Of a DNA stretch of 64,000 nt, positions 49,153-56,759 are shown piece after piece. The translations under genes and the position numbers were made by a program. Source of the DNA: Obrimoposthia wandeli (Eukaryota); assembly GCA_977020255.1 (NCBI GenBank), contig CDROCS010001117.1, positions 1 to 64,000 on the forward strand, read 5' to 3'. Below the pieces are notes generated by a model. The model had not been told where the DNA came from and did not search any database. It worked only from the letters and a program-made list of their open reading frames with translations. The first letter of the stretch is position 1; each line of letters opens with the position of its first letter.

Positions 49153-49353
49153 ATGTTAAAAGGCATGACGTCACAACGCTTGATTGCTCTATCACTGACA
49201 GGCATAGCATTTCTGAACTTCCCACTTCTTGCGCTATGGGATAAGGATATACATGTACTAGGATGGCCACTCCTGCCATTTGGATTATTTCTGATTTGGG
49301 GAATATTAATTGCAGCCCTGGCCTGGGTGATGGAAAAACGGAAAACTACCTAA
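49153..49353 (+). CDS. Small 2-TM membrane protein coupled to the SLC5 kinase
   Basis: GGAGG RBS; two hydrophobic helices; stop overlaps the next start (TAATG). Confidence 0.8.
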   Translation: MLKGMTSQRLIALSLTGIAFLNFPLLALWDKDIHVLGWPLLPFGLFLIWGILIAALAWVMEKRKTT

Positions 49354-52094
49354 TGCTCTCCCCGCCTCTGGTCATAACCGTCTCTTTTAGCTATCTGTTT
49401 ATTCTGTTTGCTGTCGCCTATTTCGGTGACAAACGTGCAGAAACTGGGCAATCCATCATTGCCAGTCCGTGGGTATATGCCCTGTCCATGGCCGTGTATT
49501 GCACCGCATGGACCTACTTCGGTAGCGTGGGACTTGCCGCCAGCGCCGGAGTGTGGTTTCTGCCCATTTACCTCGGGCCAATGCTATCCATGATCTTGGC
49601 CTGGCTCGTTGTTCGAAAAATGATCCGCATTGCGAAAACCTACCGCATTACGTCTATCGCCGATTTCATTGCCAGTCGCTATGGCAAAAGTCCCTTGCTG
49701 GCTGGGCTGGTAACAATAATCACAGTAGTCGGCATCGTTCCTTATATCGCCTTGCAGCTAAAAGCCATTTCCAGCGGTTACGATGTAATGACCACCCCTC
49801 TGGGTGGCATTGCCATACCACCGTCCGATTGGTGGTTTGATGGAACACTTTATATGGCACTGATACTGGCGGGGTTCACCATCATATTCGGTACCAGGCA
49901 TCTGGACAGCAGTGAGCGACATGAAGGCCTAGTGGCAGCCATTGCCCTCGAATCAGTCGTCAAGCTGGTGGCTTTTCTGGCGGTAGGACTATTTGTAACT
50001 TATGGCATTTTTGACGGCATGTCAGACATATTTGCCCAGGCATCAGCAATAGCAGAAATCAAGGAGTTACTGACATTTGACCAAGGACGCTCGTTTGCCT
50101 ACACCCAATGGTTTGCTTTGACACTACTGGCCATGCTGTCGGTTATTTTTCTACCACGCCAATTTCAGATCATGGTTGTGGAAAATGTCGATGAGCAACA
50201 CTTGAAACGAGCAGTTTGGGTGTTTCCGCTTTATTTATTATTGATCAATATTTTTGTCTTACCCATAGCATTGGGGGGACTGCTTTATTTTGGTACTGCT
50301 CCCGTTAATGCTGAGACCTTTGTACTTTCGCTGCCACTGGCACATGGCCAAAATATGCTGGCCTTATTCGCTTTTGTTGGGGGTCTATCGGCTGTGACCG
50401 GTATGGTAATTGTCGAAGTCATCGCTATATCAACCATGGTGTGTAATGACCTGGTCATGCCGGTGTTATTGCGCACCACACGCTTTGGTGAACGCTCCGG
50501 CGGCGACCTGACCAAGTTACTACTTTTCATTCGCCGTATTGCCATCATCGGCATCCTGTTGTTGGGCTACCTGTATTTTCATTTAGCCGGGGAAGCCTAT
50601 GCCCTGGTTAGCATCGGCCTGATCAGCTTTGCCGCTGTCGCACAATTCGCACCCGCTATGTTGGGCGGAATGTACTGGAAAAACGGTACACGCAACGGTG
50701 CGCTTGCGGGACTTTTACTGGGGTTTTTGATGTGGTCTTACACTTTAATGTTACCTTCACTCGCCAAATCTGGATGGATATCTGTAGATTTCCTTAATCA
50801 GGGTCTATTTGGCATTGAATGGCTTAAACCAGAACAATTTTTGGGGTTGGCAGGCCTTGATAATCTGACCCATTCCTTGTTTTGGAGCCTTTTTATTAAT
50901 GTAGTGGCATACGTGGCGGTATCACTCTGGAAACGCCCAACAGCCCATGAAACCAGTCAGGCCTTATTGTTTGTCGATGTTTTTCAACGTACTCGCTTAT
51001 CCCATCCGGTATTCTGGCAGGGCCAGGCAAAAGTAAATGACCTGTTACACCTGACAGGACGTTTTATGGGTGAAACAAAGGCACAGCAATTGTTCACCGA
51101 CTATGCTCAGGAAGTGGGTGCCGATGATATCGGGAAAATCCCCGAAGACGCAACACTGGTACACTTTGTAGAAACCCATCTGACCGGAGCCATTGGCAGT
51201 GCCTCTGCGCGGATTATGGTGGCTTCAGTAGTGGAAGAAGAAGCTCTGGAACTGGATGACGTAATGCGCATCCTGGAAGAAGCCTCTCAGTTACGCGCCT
51301 ATTCGGAAGCACTGGAAGAAAAGTCGTGTTCGTTGGAACAGGCCACCAAGGAACTGCAAACGGCTAATGAACAGCTTAAAAGTCTGGATAGATTGAAAGA
51401 CAACTTTATGTCATCCGTGACCCATGAGTTACGTACTCCGCTGACCTCCATCCGCGCTATGACAGAGTTAATGCTGGATGACCCCAGCATGGAGGAGGAA
51501 CAGCGCCTTGAATTTCTCAGTATTGTGGTGTCAGAAGCAGAGCGTCTCAGCAGACTGGTAAACCAGGTACTGGATATGGCAAAGATAGAAGCAGGACATG
51601 CCGAGTGGCATAGCAGTGATGTGGACATACTGGAACTGGTAACGCAGTCAGTCAATTCCATCTCTGGCATCTATAAGGAACGTGGTGCTGTATTGGAAGT
51701 CCATGCCCAGAAACATGTGTCATTGATCCGCGCCGATGCTGATCGCTTGATACAGGTGCTGATAAACCTGCTATCAAACGCCGTAAAGTTTGTGCCCGAG
51801 GATAAAGGCAAGGTTGAAGTGCATATACGAGATGCAATGGAAGGCATCACGGTTGAAGTGATTGACAACGGGCCAGGTATCGCACCGGAAAAACAGAAGC
51901 TGGTGTTTGAAAAGTTCCGCCAGGTAGAAGGTGAAACAGATCGCCAGCTAGGTACTGGCCTTGGCTTGCCGATAAGCCGTCAAATTGTGGAGCATTTTGG
52001 AGGTCGCATGTGGTTACAGTCAAACATAGGCGAAGGCGCCTGCTTTGGCTTTTTCTTACCTAGGCAAAAGGACAGTCTGGCCGATACATCATAA
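49353..52094 (+). CDS. SLC5 (Na+/solute symporter)-STAC-histidine kinase, CrbS/CbrA superfamily
   Basis: SLC5 domain (YALSMAVYCTAWTYFGSVG, IADFIASRYGKS), STAC (GAIGSASARIMV), H-box THELRTPL, N-box NLLSNAVKF, DNGPGI and GTGLGL. No PAS or REC domain. Confidence 0.92.
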   Translation: MLSPPLVITVSFSYLFILFAVAYFGDKRAETGQSIIASPWVYALSMAVYCTAWTYFGSVGLAASAGVWFLPIYLGPMLSMILAWLVVRKMIRIAKTYRITSIADFIASRYGKSPLLAGLVTIITVVGIVPYIALQLKAISSGYDVMTTPLGGIAIPPSDWWFDGTLYMALILAGFTIIFGTRHLDSSERHEGLVAAIALESVVKLVAFLAVGLFVTYGIFDGMSDIFAQASAIAEIKELLTFDQGRSFAYTQWFALTLLAMLSVIFLPRQFQIMVVENVDEQHLKRAVWVFPLYLLLINIFVLPIALGGLLYFGTAPVNAETFVLSLPLAHGQNMLALFAFVGGLSAVTGMVIVEVIAISTMVCNDLVMPVLLRTTRFGERSGGDLTKLLLFIRRIAIIGILLLGYLYFHLAGEAYALVSIGLISFAAVAQFAPAMLGGMYWKNGTRNGALAGLLLGFLMWSYTLMLPSLAKSGWISVDFLNQGLFGIEWLKPEQFLGLAGLDNLTHSLFWSLFINVVAYVAVSLWKRPTAHETSQALLFVDVFQRTRLSHPVFWQGQAKVNDLLHLTGRFMGETKAQQLFTDYAQEVGADDIGKIPEDATLVHFVETHLTGAIGSASARIMVASVVEEEALELDDVMRILEEASQLRAYSEALEEKSCSLEQATKELQTANEQLKSLDRLKDNFMSSVTHELRTPLTSIRAMTELMLDDPSMEEEQRLEFLSIVVSEAERLSRLVNQVLDMAKIEAGHAEWHSSDVDILELVTQSVNSISGIYKERGAVLEVHAQKHVSLIRADADRLIQVLINLLSNAVKFVPEDKGKVEVHIRDAMEGITVEVIDNGPGIAPEKQKLVFEKFRQVEGETDRQLGTGLGLPISRQIVEHFGGRMWLQSNIGEGACFGFFLPRQKDSLADTS

Positions 52095-52112
52095 TGATAG
52101 GAGTTCCAAAAA

Positions 52113-52484
52113 ATGAGTAAAACTATCCTGATTGCGGACGATGAGAAGAATATCCTGATTTCTCTGGAGTTCCTGATGAAAAGGGAAGGCTACCTTGTGG
52201 TGACAGCACATGACGGCCAGGAAGCGATTGATGCCATATCCAGGGAGCATCCCGACCTGGTGTTACTGGATGTCATGATGCCCAAAAAGACTGGCTTTGA
52301 TGTTTGCCAAGAAGTACGCGCAAACCCCGTTATGAAAGATATCCTTATTCTGATGTTGACGGCTAAAGGGCGTGATACGGATATCGCCAAGGGACTGGCA
52401 ATGGGTGCTAATGGTTACGTCATCAAGCCATTTTCCACTAGGGAACTGGCACAAAAAGTGCGCGACATGCTGGATCAGGCATGA
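52113..52484 (+). CDS. Single-domain response regulator (REC only)
   Basis: IADDE, LLDVMMP, LTA and KPF catalytic set intact; 123 aa. Confidence 0.94.
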   Translation: MSKTILIADDEKNILISLEFLMKREGYLVVTAHDGQEAIDAISREHPDLVLLDVMMPKKTGFDVCQEVRANPVMKDILILMLTAKGRDTDIAKGLAMGANGYVIKPFSTRELAQKVRDMLDQA

Positions 52485-54652
52485 GACGCTTTGACTGGAG
52501 GGTAGCTATTGGTGTGGCCATCATTGGCATTATCTGCCTGTTATGGCTGCTGGCAACAGGCATATTAATCTGGTCTACCCTTGACGAAACAGGTCGTGAT
52601 GCAGTTGCAGCCACACTGAGGCCAAGCCTTGAATTGTTGATTTTAATGTGGGCAATATCTCTGGGTGCGGTTGGTATCGCACTGCGTTGGCTAGTGGCCT
52701 ACTTCATGACCGCCCCTGCCCGTCTCGCAGAAGATGCCCAAGTTTTGCTTGGCACCGATGTAAAACGCCAACTTAAACCAAGTGGTAGTATTGAAAACCG
52801 TAGCTTGACCGATCTGTTCAATCAGTTAGTGCAGCAGCGAGAAACATTACGTGAGGAAATGGGTGCACTTGTGCAGGAAGCAGCCCACAACACAGAACTG
52901 GAAAAAAATCGCCTGGCCGCACTGATGTCCGAACTCAGTAAAAGTGTCGTGGTTTGCAATCTGGATGGACGTATCCTGCTATACAACAACCGAGCCCGAA
53001 GACAGTTCCAACGATTATCACAAGCCACCAAGGTTGCGGCTGGGGTTGAATTGATCGGTCTTGGCCGTTCAATCTATGGTCTGTTCGATCGCAAATTACT
53101 CACGCATGCACTGGAAAATATTCAACACCGTTTACAACATAACGTAGCATCCCCATCAGCACAGTTTGTAACCACCACACAGTCCGGGCAATTGCTACGA
53201 GTACAAATGGCACCGGTACGCGCTGTCCAACTTGAAAACAGGGAATCCGCTCAGATGACGGGATTTGTACTCTTAACCGAAAACATCACCCATGAATTTG
53301 AAGCACTATCACAACAGGATCACGTTCTAAATACGCTTACCGAACGCAGTCGTGCTGCAATAGCAAACATGCAGGCAGCTCTTGATGTACTGGAATACCC
53401 CGATCTTGAACCAGGCATGCAAGAAAGTCTGCTGGGTGTTTTGCGTGAAGAGACGCAGGGATTGGGGGAACGTATCCATGAACTCAAATCAACCACCGTA
53501 AATGGCTTCATGTCACACTGGTCCCTCGAAGATATGCTGGGAGCTGACTTGGTTGAGGCCGCCATAAACCGTATTAATGCACTGGAGGGACTTACCGCTA
53601 CCGAATTCAGTGTCGATACTTCCGTTTGGCTGAAAGTGGAAAGCTTTACATTACTAGAAGCAATCACCTATCTGACCGAACATGTACACCTGGAATGTGG
53701 CGTGGACACGGTGCAATTTCGTCTTAGCATGACCGAAACTCATGGTCAGCTTGATCTTTGCTGGACTCCACTAAACAATAAAAAGGACACTAGGTTAAAT
53801 TGCGAAAAAGATTTCATTCGGCTAGGCGGTGAAAAAAGCTCATTGACAATCCAGGATGTCGTTGAACGCCATGATGGTGCGTTCTGGTATGAACACGAAA
53901 CAGAGGGTAATCAGGCATTCTTTCGTTTCCTTGTACCACTGGCTAAACCACAAGAGCAGCTGGATACATCGGCTTTGATGCGCAAAGGTAGCCGCCCGGA
54001 ATTTTACGACTTTGACCTGTTTCAAGCCTCGGAACAAACGCGTTCACTGGAAGATTGCAAGCTTACCGAACTCTCCTACACCGTCTTTGATACAGAAACG
54101 ACCGGGCTAGATCCATCTGGCGGTGATGAAATTATCCAGATCGGAGCCATACGCATAGTCAACGGTAAGCTGTTGCATCAGGAAACCTTTGATCAACTGG
54201 TAGATCCCAGGCGCTCTATACCGACAATAACTATACCGATTCACGGCATCCAGCCCGATATGGTGAAAGGACAGCCAGTCATTGAAGAAGTATTACCAGC
54301 CTTTCATGCGTTTGTGGGTGATACCGTGTTGGTAGCACACAATGCCGCATTTGACATGCGCTGCCTGCAAGTGAAGGAAACGGCTACCGGGGTGGTGTTC
54401 GATCAGCCCGTACTAGATACCTTACTACTGTCTGCTGTCGTCCATCCCAATCAGGAATCGCACGGGCTGGAAGAAATTGCCGAACGCTTTAACATTAATA
54501 TTCATGGGCGCCACACGGCCTTGGGTGACGCCATGGCAACAGCGGAAGTATTCCTGCAACTGATTCACCTTTTGGCAGAGCAAGGCATCTATACCATGGG
54601 ACAGGCACGTGTCGCCGCGCAAAAGACCTACTATGCTCGTCTCAAATACTAA
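52481..54652 (+). CDS. Membrane-anchored HAMP-PAS-degenerate kinase-DEDDh 3'-5' exonuclease fusion
   Basis: 2 TM helices, HAMP-like segment, PAS (VVVCNLDGRILLYN); Exo I VFDTETTG, Exo II AHNAAFD and Exo III HTALGDA. ATGA overlap with the REC gene. Confidence 0.88.
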   Translation: MRRFDWRVAIGVAIIGIICLLWLLATGILIWSTLDETGRDAVAATLRPSLELLILMWAISLGAVGIALRWLVAYFMTAPARLAEDAQVLLGTDVKRQLKPSGSIENRSLTDLFNQLVQQRETLREEMGALVQEAAHNTELEKNRLAALMSELSKSVVVCNLDGRILLYNNRARRQFQRLSQATKVAAGVELIGLGRSIYGLFDRKLLTHALENIQHRLQHNVASPSAQFVTTTQSGQLLRVQMAPVRAVQLENRESAQMTGFVLLTENITHEFEALSQQDHVLNTLTERSRAAIANMQAALDVLEYPDLEPGMQESLLGVLREETQGLGERIHELKSTTVNGFMSHWSLEDMLGADLVEAAINRINALEGLTATEFSVDTSVWLKVESFTLLEAITYLTEHVHLECGVDTVQFRLSMTETHGQLDLCWTPLNNKKDTRLNCEKDFIRLGGEKSSLTIQDVVERHDGAFWYEHETEGNQAFFRFLVPLAKPQEQLDTSALMRKGSRPEFYDFDLFQASEQTRSLEDCKLTELSYTVFDTETTGLDPSGGDEIIQIGAIRIVNGKLLHQETFDQLVDPRRSIPTITIPIHGIQPDMVKGQPVIEEVLPAFHAFVGDTVLVAHNAAFDMRCLQVKETATGVVFDQPVLDTLLLSAVVHPNQESHGLEEIAERFNINIHGRHTALGDAMATAEVFLQLIHLLAEQGIYTMGQARVAAQKTYYARLKY

Positions 54653-54685
54653 AAACCTATCGGAGTTAAAAGTATCGCTGCCGAC

Positions 54686-54720
54686 TGACCTAATGACCTA
54701 ATAACCTAATGACCTAATGA
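54686..54720. repeat. 8-bp tandem repeat at the right edge of the GC-rich block
   Basis: TGACCTAA TGACCTAA TAACCTAA TGACCTAA TGA. Confidence 0.75.
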
Positions 54721-55016
54721 CGCCAATCATCCATCGTTCACGCTTACCTTAAAGGCACTTGTTCAAAATTAAATCCCTCCTGCCCGTCAATTATTCCCTT
54801 TAATTGCTCAGTCGTTCCCAAAGGACTAGTTTAGAAACGTTTGATGCTGCGTTATTTATTTTGATAGTGGCGCAACACGGATAGTAGCTTATTAGAGAAT
54901 GCAGTCGGTAAAGGAAGTACCTTATTAGATAATGCAGGAGCTATTATCCTAAGCATATTCTACTGAGTAAGCATTATTTTCAATAAAGGCCTTGCTTAAA
55001 GACGTCTCTAATTGCA

Positions 55017-55487: not shown

Positions 55488-56759
55488 ATGCCTGTTAATT
55501 TACCTGAAATAATTCCTGCTTCACTTACGCCAATTCAAGGCATTCGCCTAGGTTGGGCCGAGTCAAATATTAAAAAACCAAACCGTAAAGATTTACTCGT
55601 TATTGAAATCTGTGATGGTAGTGCAGTATTCTGCTTTTTACTCAAAATCGATTTTGTGCTGCACCGGTTACCTTATGTAAAAAACATTTAGACGCAGTAA
55701 AAAAGATTGATATTACGGGCACTAATGTTTCAGGTATAAAAGCATTAGTAATCAATACAGGTAATGCCAACGCAGGAACAGGCGAGCAAGGCATGTTAGA
55801 TGCACTCACGACCTGTCAAAATTTAGCTGAAATTATGTCAATTCCAGTCGAGTCGATATTACCTTTTTCAACAGGCGTAATTTTAGAACATTTACCTATG
55901 GATAAGCTCTTAACAGGTTTACCACTGGCCGTTGCTAATTTGACCACCGATAATTGGGCTGATGCGGCTTCAGCAATTATGACCACAGACATTGCGCCTA
56001 AAGCTTATGCTACTAATGTAAAAATTGGCGATCATCGCGTAAATATTACCGGTATATCGAAAGGTGCCGGTATGATCCATCCTAATATGGCCACCATGTT
56101 AGGTTATGTGGCAACCGATGCGAATATAACGCAATCGTTGTTAGATAGTATGACCAAAAAAATTGCAGATTTATCATTTAACTGTATTTCTGTTGACGGC
56201 GATACCTCAACCAATGATTCCTTTATTGTTATCGCCACCGGAAAAAGTGACGCTACCGCTATCACAACCCCTAACGATGAAGGTTATCAGGAAGTGTTTA
56301 ATGCCTTGCTTGAAACCTCTCAGTATTTGGCCAGTTTATTGTTCGTGATGGCGAAGGCGCAAACTGCTTATAACAGTAACGGTTAAAGGTGCACAAACAC
56401 TTGATGAAGCAAAAACTATCGGTTTTTCTATCGGTAAAAGTCCATTAGTTAAAACGGCAATGTTTGCTTCTGATCCTAATTTAGGCCGTGTACTTGCTGC
56501 TATTGGTTACGCTTCAAGAGAGTGTGAGTCATTAGCTGATTTAGATACTAACCAATTAGAGCTCTATTTTGGTGGTTTATTAGTGGCTGAAAAAGGCGGC
56601 CGTGCTGCCAGTTATAAGGAAGATGAGGGGCAAGCGATAATGAACGAAGCAGAAATTGATATTACCGTGCAACTTCATCGAGGCAATGAAGAGTCAACTA
56701 TTTGGACCTGTGATTTTAGCTATGATTACGTAAAAATTAATGCAGAATACAGAACCTAA
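55488..56759 (+). pseudogene. argJ: Bifunctional ornithine acetyltransferase ArgJ, frameshifted (possibly assembly error)
   Basis: KDLLVI, NTGNANAGTG, KGAGMIHPNMATMLG, VDGDTSTND, IVRDGEGA (shifted frame) and DFSYDYVKINAEYRT motifs. Single-base losses near 55630, 56335 and 56365. Confidence 0.88.

Follow-up and report, generated by a model that had tools for sequence, protein, structure and literature searches.

The output of a two-component pathway is nearly always a transcription factor, a second-messenger enzyme or a motor switch. A histidine kinase core described as working in the reverse direction is that of DivL from Caulobacter crescentus, which senses the phosphorylated single-domain receiver DivK~P, with information flowing backwards relative to an ordinary kinase (PMC4211667). 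Among pathways in which the kinase is fused to a transporter-like domain, CrbS/R are reported to control acetate use (PMC5715377, PMC5436829). Both CrbS/CrbR (MxtR/ErdR) and CbrA/CbrB, which are SLC5/STAC transporter-kinase systems, end in DNA-binding response regulators that activate transcription. In Pseudomonas aeruginosa, PA3232 is presumably an exonuclease and PA3233 a DUF294 protein. The PA3232-PA3235 genes, together with ActP, are induced on propionate under MxtR/ErdR control, and the cluster responds to both propionate and acetate (PMC9765439). Here we describe a three-gene cassette of a marine Colwellia in a 64,000-nt stretch of DNA filed under Obrimoposthia wandeli (assembly GCA_977020255.1, contig CDROCS010001117.1, positions 1 to 64,000; hereafter the window, which contains no runs of N and in which nothing resembling human sequence was seen). 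The cassette encodes a transporter-like protein fused to an intact histidine kinase (gene 1), a stand-alone receiver (REC; gene 2) and a 723-residue protein (gene 3), in which a membrane-anchored histidine kinase core without its catalytic residues is joined to a DEDDh 3'-5' exonuclease.

The kinase core of the gene 3 protein is hidden at the level of the single sequence, because a phmmer search of residues 265-520 against the PDB returns only chance matches (E 0.4 or worse) and Pfam gives no significant match in residues 1-530, reaching neither HisKA nor HATPase_c, whereas a profile of the family identifies the domain. The family was obtained by searching the middle region of the protein against 1.84 billion cluster representatives with a cut-off of E 1e-3. 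In total 552 clusters match at this level, and nearly all full-length members among the matches listed are 690-770 residues long with the region at the same place. Two alignments were used, one of 88 full-length members (A1) and one of 89 middle regions (A2). Compared with the PDB, the A2 profile matches WalK (5c93, E 5.5e-11; 4u7n, E 7.5e-11), VicK (4i5s, E 4.5e-9), DivL (4q20, E 2e-7) and HK853 (E 5.6e-6), and also ZraS and KdpD; profile positions 2-228 are aligned at E 5.5e-11 to 2e-7, the matched kinase sequence extends over both DHp and CA, and the top 12 significant matches are all histidine kinases. In individual relatives the only recurrent Pfam matches, all of them weak, are to HisKA (23/89, best E 2.6e-5) and HATPase_c (9/89, best E 5e-4). 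The region also aligns by hhalign to the DHp-CA core of the cassette's own kinase, built from the 73 loci in which the genes could be paired, with a probability of 94.9% and E 4.3e-8 over 212 columns at 17% identity.

Structural comparison leads to the same assignment. The AlphaFold2 (AF2) model computed on A2 (pLDDT 87.9) consists of two long helices followed by an alpha/beta sandwich, and all 50 of the Foldseek matches listed from the PDB are kinases (E ~1e-9 to 1e-10), including DivL, HK853, WalK, CpxA and RetS (6dk7). In VIA-align comparisons, the CA-like part superposes on the CA domain of PrrB (1ysr) with Z 15.6 and a root-mean-square deviation of 2.5 A over 129 of 136 residues, and the DHp-CA unit on that of CpxA with Z 14.0 over 211 residues. 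An earlier note on this DNA, made from the letters alone, had proposed a hidden pseudo-HisKA and pseudo-HATPase at about 53330-53945 (residues 284-489), to be checked by AlphaFold and Foldseek; the profile, hhalign, AF2 and Foldseek results agree on this proposal, and the region is modelled with a DHp/HATPase fold. Alignments and models together confirm residues ~270-487 as a histidine kinase core made up of a DHp hairpin and a CA domain. As in WalK/VicK, HK853 and CpxA, the hairpin is of the four-helix-bundle type and the CA domain is alpha/beta, input modules of transmembrane (TM), PAS and, tentatively, HAMP type lie upstream, and profiles still pick out the H-box, the N-box and the C-terminal motifs. 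What sets the gene 3 protein apart from those kinases is the absence of the phospho-acceptor His, of the phosphatase Thr/Asn, of the N-box Asn and of both G boxes (G1 and G2), together with a remodelled ATP-lid and an appended nuclease.

The register of these boxes comes from two independent alignments that agree with each other, the profile alignment to WalK/VicK and the hhalign alignment to the cassette kinase. The segment TLTERSRAAIANM is aligned to SHELRTPLTSL, which places Glu288 (53342-53344) in the phospho-His column. Glu288 is invariant in the 73 closest loci, and among the 88 relatives the column holds Glu in 55, Gln in 9, Asp in 8, Ala in 5 and His in 2 (Glu, Gln or Asp in 72/88). 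The phosphatase Thr/Asn at H+4 is replaced by Ala292, with Ala in 52, Ser in 14 and Gly in 7 of the 88. LLEAITYLTEH is aligned to the N-box with His401 in the column of the Mg/ATP-binding Asn, a column occupied by Arg in 62/88 relatives and by Asn in two; LDLCW lines up with the G1 box and puts Trp428 in place of its Asp, a position at which 85/88 relatives have Trp and none has Asp. Finally, LTIQDVVERHDGAFW...FFRFLVPLA is aligned to HATPase_c from G2 to the C-terminal end, with only the first Gly of GxGxG kept; the CA tail RHGG...FRxLLP is retained, and the former ATP-lid region is modelled by AF2 as a loop and a beta-hairpin. The by-eye reading of the earlier note, an H-box without its His, LLEAITYL at an N-box without its Asn and an HATPase end without the GxGxG boxes, stands in all three respects, and its expectation that homologues would have lost the H, N and G boxes while keeping DEDDh is borne out across the 88 relatives. 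No relative combines a phosphorylatable His with ATP boxes: the two that carry His (P0186 and P0225) also lack every ATP box.

New residues have become fixed in the CA-like domain. W383, W428, W441, R463 and R482 are near-invariant in A1, which argues for a new function rather than decay. Because the catalytic boxes are replaced family-wide and DEDDh is intact in 85/88 relatives, the whole family appears to have lost kinase chemistry and to have retained the fold and the nuclease. An antisense open reading frame of 115 residues (53320-53667, minus strand) also lies within the pseudokinase region and is most likely spurious.

DivL is a close parallel, with the same PAS-DHp-CA layout and a replaced phospho-acceptor His, and it matches the dead core by Foldseek (E 1e-9) and VIA-align (Z 13) as well as by profile. 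The two nevertheless differ in several respects. DivL has Tyr at the His site, whereas the gene 3 family has Glu, Gln or Asp, and the ATP boxes of the gene 3 family are replaced by the conserved Trp383, Trp428 and Trp441. DivL itself carries no output enzyme and exerts its effect in trans, on CckA, whereas the exonuclease of gene 3 is fused in cis. DivL belongs to cell-cycle control, and gene 3 to a transporter-kinase cassette with putative receiver binding.

The C-terminal domain is a DnaQ/PolC-type nuclease. Pfam places RNase_T at residues 535-691 (E 3.1e-36; 125.8 bits against a cut-off of 24), and the catalytic set D537, E539, D625, H678 and D683 is present. At least one of the three relatives in which DEDDh is not intact (P0137) ends in a frameshifted tail. 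The closest solved structure to residues 520-723 is the PolC exonuclease 2p1j (E 3.6e-31), followed by DinG-N and epsilon (E. coli epsilon, 1j53, E 5.6e-14). The domain shares the full DEDDh set with the PolC and DnaQ proofreading exonucleases but lies outside any polymerase, is membrane-tethered, and comes after a signalling module and a linker motif that is itself conserved. Judging from these relationships, its substrate is most likely a 3' terminus, either on DNA or on a short oligonucleotide. P0137 was considered as a member without a nuclease or with another output domain and was rejected as an artefact, its C-terminal tail being out of frame. Candidate stand-alone nuclease relatives were likewise rejected, the matches being fragments of the same gene on short or frameshift-rich long-read contigs, and the search of relatives found no genuine split or stand-alone version of the gene 3 nuclease. 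The gene 3 product is 99% identical to a Colwellia demingiae protein labelled 'DNA polymerase III subunit epsilon', and its relatives carry that label, '3'-5' exonuclease' or 'exonuclease domain-containing protein' in the databases.

Gene 3 occurs in a fixed company. In a scan of one genome per species, relatives are present in at least 546 species of Beta- and Gammaproteobacteria, and the genomic context was analysed in the best 80 loci, which include Colwellia, Thiothrix, Thiolinea, Wenzhouxiangella, Hydrogenophaga, Rhodoferax, Polaromonas, Zoogloea and Methyloversatilis. By tblastn, the order transporter-kinase, REC, gene 3 is found at every one of these loci with enough upstream sequence, and in 73/80 all three genes are covered well enough to be paired. 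Outside Colwellia, the kinase is 59-76% and the REC 62-79% identical to the cassette's, and the order is kept by two distant members (L081 and L083) with only 24-26% identity in the middle region. The gene 1 kinase has both HisKA (residues 712-778, E 1.3e-18) and HATPase_c (825-935, E 8.5e-29), and its His721 is invariant across the 73 loci; it has no REC of its own and no PAS detected by Pfam. The transporter part is matched weakly by SSF over residues 69-487 (16.5 bits against a cut-off of 22.8). In the 123-residue gene 2 product Pfam finds the receiver domain and nothing further, and the REC stop and the gene 3 start overlap as ATGA. Comparative analysis establishes a membrane-anchored dead kinase core fused in cis to a nuclease with a complete catalytic set, within a conserved cassette. 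The co-conservation of this fusion with a transporter-kinase and a lone receiver suggests that the cassette is a signalling pathway whose output is a nuclease rather than a transcription factor.

The likely point of contact between the receiver and gene 3 is the dead DHp. REC residues D9, D10, D53, T83, Y102 and K105 are invariant in the 73 loci, as are N13, I14, S17 and L21 of REC alpha-1, which correspond to the specificity-setting positions in HK853-RR468. In alpha-1 of the dead DHp, positions +7, +8, +11 and +12 from the His site, the equivalents of receiver-contacting kinase positions, are near-invariant, while +9, +13 and +17 vary. Docking of REC on the dead DHp is favoured because of the lone-REC synteny, the ATGA overlap, the invariant REC alpha-1 and the near-invariant DHp alpha-1. 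With good reason, therefore, we infer by analogy with DivL that phosphorylated REC (REC~P) would dock on the dead DHp and switch the nuclease. The transporter-kinase would sense or transport a small carboxylate, with acetate, pyruvate or propionate likely candidates because of the neighbouring genes, autophosphorylate, and hand its phosphate to the lone REC. REC~P would then dock on the dead DHp at its conserved alpha-1/alpha-2 face, as a receiver does on a real kinase, and docking would shift the DHp/CA conformation so that the tethered exonuclease is turned on or off. Information would run backwards through the kinase fold, as in DivL, and a second input, from the cytoplasm, would enter through the HAMP-like and PAS modules. 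A probable working partner of the nuclease is the cNMP-binding/CBS/DUF294 nucleotidyltransferase that adjoins many of these cassettes.

A cassette pathway in which REC~P gates a pseudokinase-tethered exonuclease is the best explanation overall, and we regard it as reasonably probable, although several observations weigh against it. The conservation of the DHp face could just as well reflect dimer packing or contact with some other partner, and the REC and DHp contact residues are near-invariant in the 73 paired loci, leaving no covariation to read. Since gene 3 also encodes PAS and HAMP-like input modules, the regulator of its product need not be REC. His stands at the H-box position in two of the 88 members, and the full-length AF2 model (pLDDT 86, pTM 0.72) is uninformative on contacts between CA and the nuclease. 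Finally, the distant locus L082 (1-4768; protein P0232) has neither REC nor kinase on its 4.8-kb contig, where a phosphoenolpyruvate (PEP)-utilising enzyme lies upstream and a CBS/DUF294 gene downstream; this member may represent a form without coupling to the two-component pair.

Three alternatives were considered. The dead DHp-CA could be a dimerisation and transmission scaffold and nothing more, with the exonuclease controlled by the HAMP-like and PAS modules of the same protein (through a PAS-bound metabolite, for instance) and with REC acting elsewhere or as a phosphate sink. The very strong conservation of the PAS core, the L082 variant without REC nearby and the possibility that the conserved DHp positions are bundle or dimer contacts all fit such a scaffold. 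It leaves aside, however, that REC lies directly upstream in 73/80 loci and in distant members, with frames often overlapping or near-abutting, that a lone REC must act on some protein and the cassette conserves no other candidate for that role, and that the conserved alpha-1 positions are the receiver contacts in HK853-RR468 (PDB titles 4jas, 4jav); we consider it unlikely. If the dead DHp instead behaved like that of RetS, it would heterodimerise with the DHp of the transporter-kinase and modulate its kinase/phosphatase balance, or be controlled by the conformation of that kinase, while REC formed a parallel branch. Both proteins are membrane-anchored and co-encoded, their kinase cores are homologous, and the RetS kinase region (6dk7) is among the structural matches; but the two cores share only 17% identity, the invariant lone REC is left without a role, and the exonuclease has no obvious link to kinase modulation, which makes heterodimerisation a decidedly improbable account.

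Least likely of the three, because the Thr/Asn and the ATP boxes are missing, is that the core still takes part in phosphoryl chemistry, as a REC~P phosphatase or as an acceptor phosphorylated in trans. The His at the H-box site in two relatives, the conserved Arg at H+3 and the retained RHGG motif speak for such activity. Yet Glu288 does not vary in the 73 closest loci, the H+4 residue is Ala, Ser or Gly in 73/88, the G1 Asp is found in 0/88 and the N-box Asn in 2/88, and both His-bearing members are themselves devoid of all ATP boxes; we give this possibility very little weight. Gating of the exonuclease by REC~P remains the preferred explanation. A more ambitious version of it, in which the cassette represents a new class of two-component output, REC gates the tethered exonuclease through the dead kinase, the nuclease is DUF294's 'eraser', the YDFDLF motif may recruit the protein to DNA and 3'-end processing is coupled to carboxylates, is offered tentatively and is, taken as a whole, doubtful.

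Table 1. Genes of the cassette and predicted domains and motifs of the gene 3 protein, in window coordinates.
Feature	Coordinates	Strand	Basis
Gene 1: 943-aa fusion of an SSS (SLC5)-like transporter part (weak match) and an intact histidine kinase	49263..52094	+	Pfam
Gene 2: stand-alone receiver (REC), 123 aa, no output domain	52113..52484	+	Response_reg E 4.4e-28 (Pfam)
Gene 3: 723-aa TM-TM-HAMP-like-PAS-dead DHp-dead CA-linker-DEDDh exonuclease	52481..54652	+	Open reading frame, AF2
Two TM helices, residues ~3-35 and 48-76, with ~15-residue loop	52487..52708	+	Kyte-Doolittle, 19-aa windows >=1.6
HAMP-like helical hairpin and signalling helix, residues 76-150 (tentative)	52706..52930	+	AF2
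Cytoplasmic PAS, residues 155-268	52943..53284	+	AF2 five-strand PAS topology; PAS_4 in relatives
Dead DHp (HisKA-like) hairpin, residues 270-342	53288..53506	+	Alignments to WalK, VicK and the operon kinase
Dead CA (HATPase_c-like), residues 350-487	53528..53941	+	VIA-align, Foldseek, column counts
Near-invariant short linear motif S-R-P-E-[FY]-Y-D-F-D-L-F, residues 504-514	53990..54022	+	A1 columns
DnaQ/PolC-type DEDDh 3'-5' exonuclease, residues 532-720	54074..54640	+	RNase_T, PDB match

The modules upstream of the dead core are supported to different degrees (Table 1). The earlier note had given the architecture as TM-TM-HAMP-PAS-pseudokinase-DEDDh; the transmembrane helices, PAS, pseudokinase and exonuclease hold, and the HAMP assignment is tentative. 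AF2 places helices at residues 6-33 and 36-91 over the transmembrane region, and hydropathy reveals no periplasmic sensor domain, only the short loop of ~15 residues between the two segments. In the HAMP-like region, the model has a helix to residue 91, a loop at 92-103 and a helix at 104-150, and among ten relatives a single weak Pfam match to HAMP is seen (P0161, residues 76-115, E 0.041). The helix-loop-helix at residues 76-120 lies where a HAMP domain is expected, directly after the second TM helix; residues 76-150 are tentatively described as HAMP-like. For the PAS domain, the match of the window protein itself is sub-threshold in Pfam (E 0.11), and PAS_4 is above its cut-off of 23.1 bits in P0193, P0161 and P0260 (28.4, 25.1 and 24.5 bits). 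Among the 88 relatives in A1, N169 and G193 of the PAS core are invariant, and C159, Y168, R196, H209 and R240 are present in at least 90%. Such strong conservation hints that the domain binds one particular small molecule, perhaps a carboxylate or an acyl metabolite.

The linker between the dead core and the nuclease (residues 488-530) is variable, gapped and modelled with low confidence (pLDDT 38-52 over residues 491-520). Its short linear motif stands out against variable flanking columns, with D510, F511 and L513 each retained in 86/88 relatives. The last five residues of the motif resemble beta-sliding-clamp-binding peptides of the QL[SD]LF type. A beta-clamp reading was considered and set aside; in the one paper with the peptide QFDLF, it served only as a control.

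The surroundings of the cassette point to carboxylate metabolism in many species. A cNMP-binding/CBS/DUF294 nucleotidyltransferase adjoins the cassette in 51/80 loci, a DUF4212 and SSS transporter pair lies near it in 42/80 (examples of these neighbours are L009:13466-15331, L010:7318-9543 and L019:9894-10199), and a PEP synthase or PPDK-like enzyme is nearby in some. In Colwellia, neither the DUF294 nor the DUF4212 and SSS neighbours are present within 8 kb. Like CrbS/CrbR and CbrA/CbrB, the cassette has a kinase fused to a putative SSS-like transporter, and it shares their monocarboxylate-uptake theme through these neighbours. Unlike them, it has a lone REC and a nuclease-bearing pseudokinase and no DNA-binding regulator. 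The combination of a DEDDh exonuclease, a cNMP/CBS/DUF294 protein and an SSS-type carboxylate transporter also recalls the pairs of DUF294 and a small DnaQ-like exonuclease found beside actP-acs. In those pairs the exonuclease is a small stand-alone protein, whereas here it is the C-terminal domain of a membrane pseudokinase of ~720 residues tied to a two-component pair. None of the 80 loci carries a further exonuclease gene, and the fused nuclease seems to replace the small exonuclease that usually accompanies DUF294.

The Colwellia cassette was probably acquired horizontally, judging by its base composition and its relatives. The cassette (49263-54652) has a GC content of 48.6% and a GC content at third codon positions of 0.47-0.55, in contrast to 37.9% and 0.27-0.36 in the rest of the window, and its proteins are 70-79% identical to those of Thiothrix (73% for gene 3). 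No flanking repeats were found at the cassette borders and no integrase was seen there. The three-gene cassette is conserved and mobile between classes. Downstream, 30 nt past the stop of the exonuclease gene, about five tandem copies of an 8-nt CCTAATGA-like unit (54681-54721) open an AT-rich stretch of ~900 nt without open reading frames. Beyond it, argJ (~55560-56759) is split over three frames with at least two frameshifts; two pieces are the open reading frames 55793-56386 and 56460-56759, and the N-terminal part lies in another frame. The breaks seem to reflect either a pseudogene or a series of sequencing errors.

Two marine metatranscriptome studies contain assembled contigs that match the cassette at 95-100%. 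A 1784-nt contig corresponds to window positions 51747-53530, from the 3' end of the kinase gene through REC into gene 3, and another of 709 nt corresponds to 52026-52734 and also crosses gene borders of the cassette. These contigs fit expression of the cassette as one unit in nature and lend it weak support; contigs are no proof of a single transcript, and DNA carry-over is possible. A promoter scan of the cassette gave results at chance level.

A full-text search, outside which subscription journals largely lay, found no published work on the gene 3 architecture, on DUF294 with an exonuclease or on a pseudokinase with an exonuclease. Each of the parts (pseudo-histidine kinase, lone receiver, DEDDh nuclease) is known, but a conserved pathway that joins them to give a nuclease output is not. 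The gene 3 family is widespread and very conserved, yet its annotation goes no further than 'DNA polymerase III subunit epsilon' or 'exonuclease'. If the proposed pathway is correct, a nuclease output read through a dead kinase would be a new output for two-component systems and, after DivL, would add a second clear example of a kinase core that serves, in reverse, to sense a receiver. The pair of DUF294 and exonuclease near acetate and propionate uptake genes gains a link to a defined signalling pathway, and with it a handle on the role of the pair. In the more ambitious version outlined above, carboxylate availability would be coupled directly to the processing of nucleic-acid 3' ends, and not to transcription.

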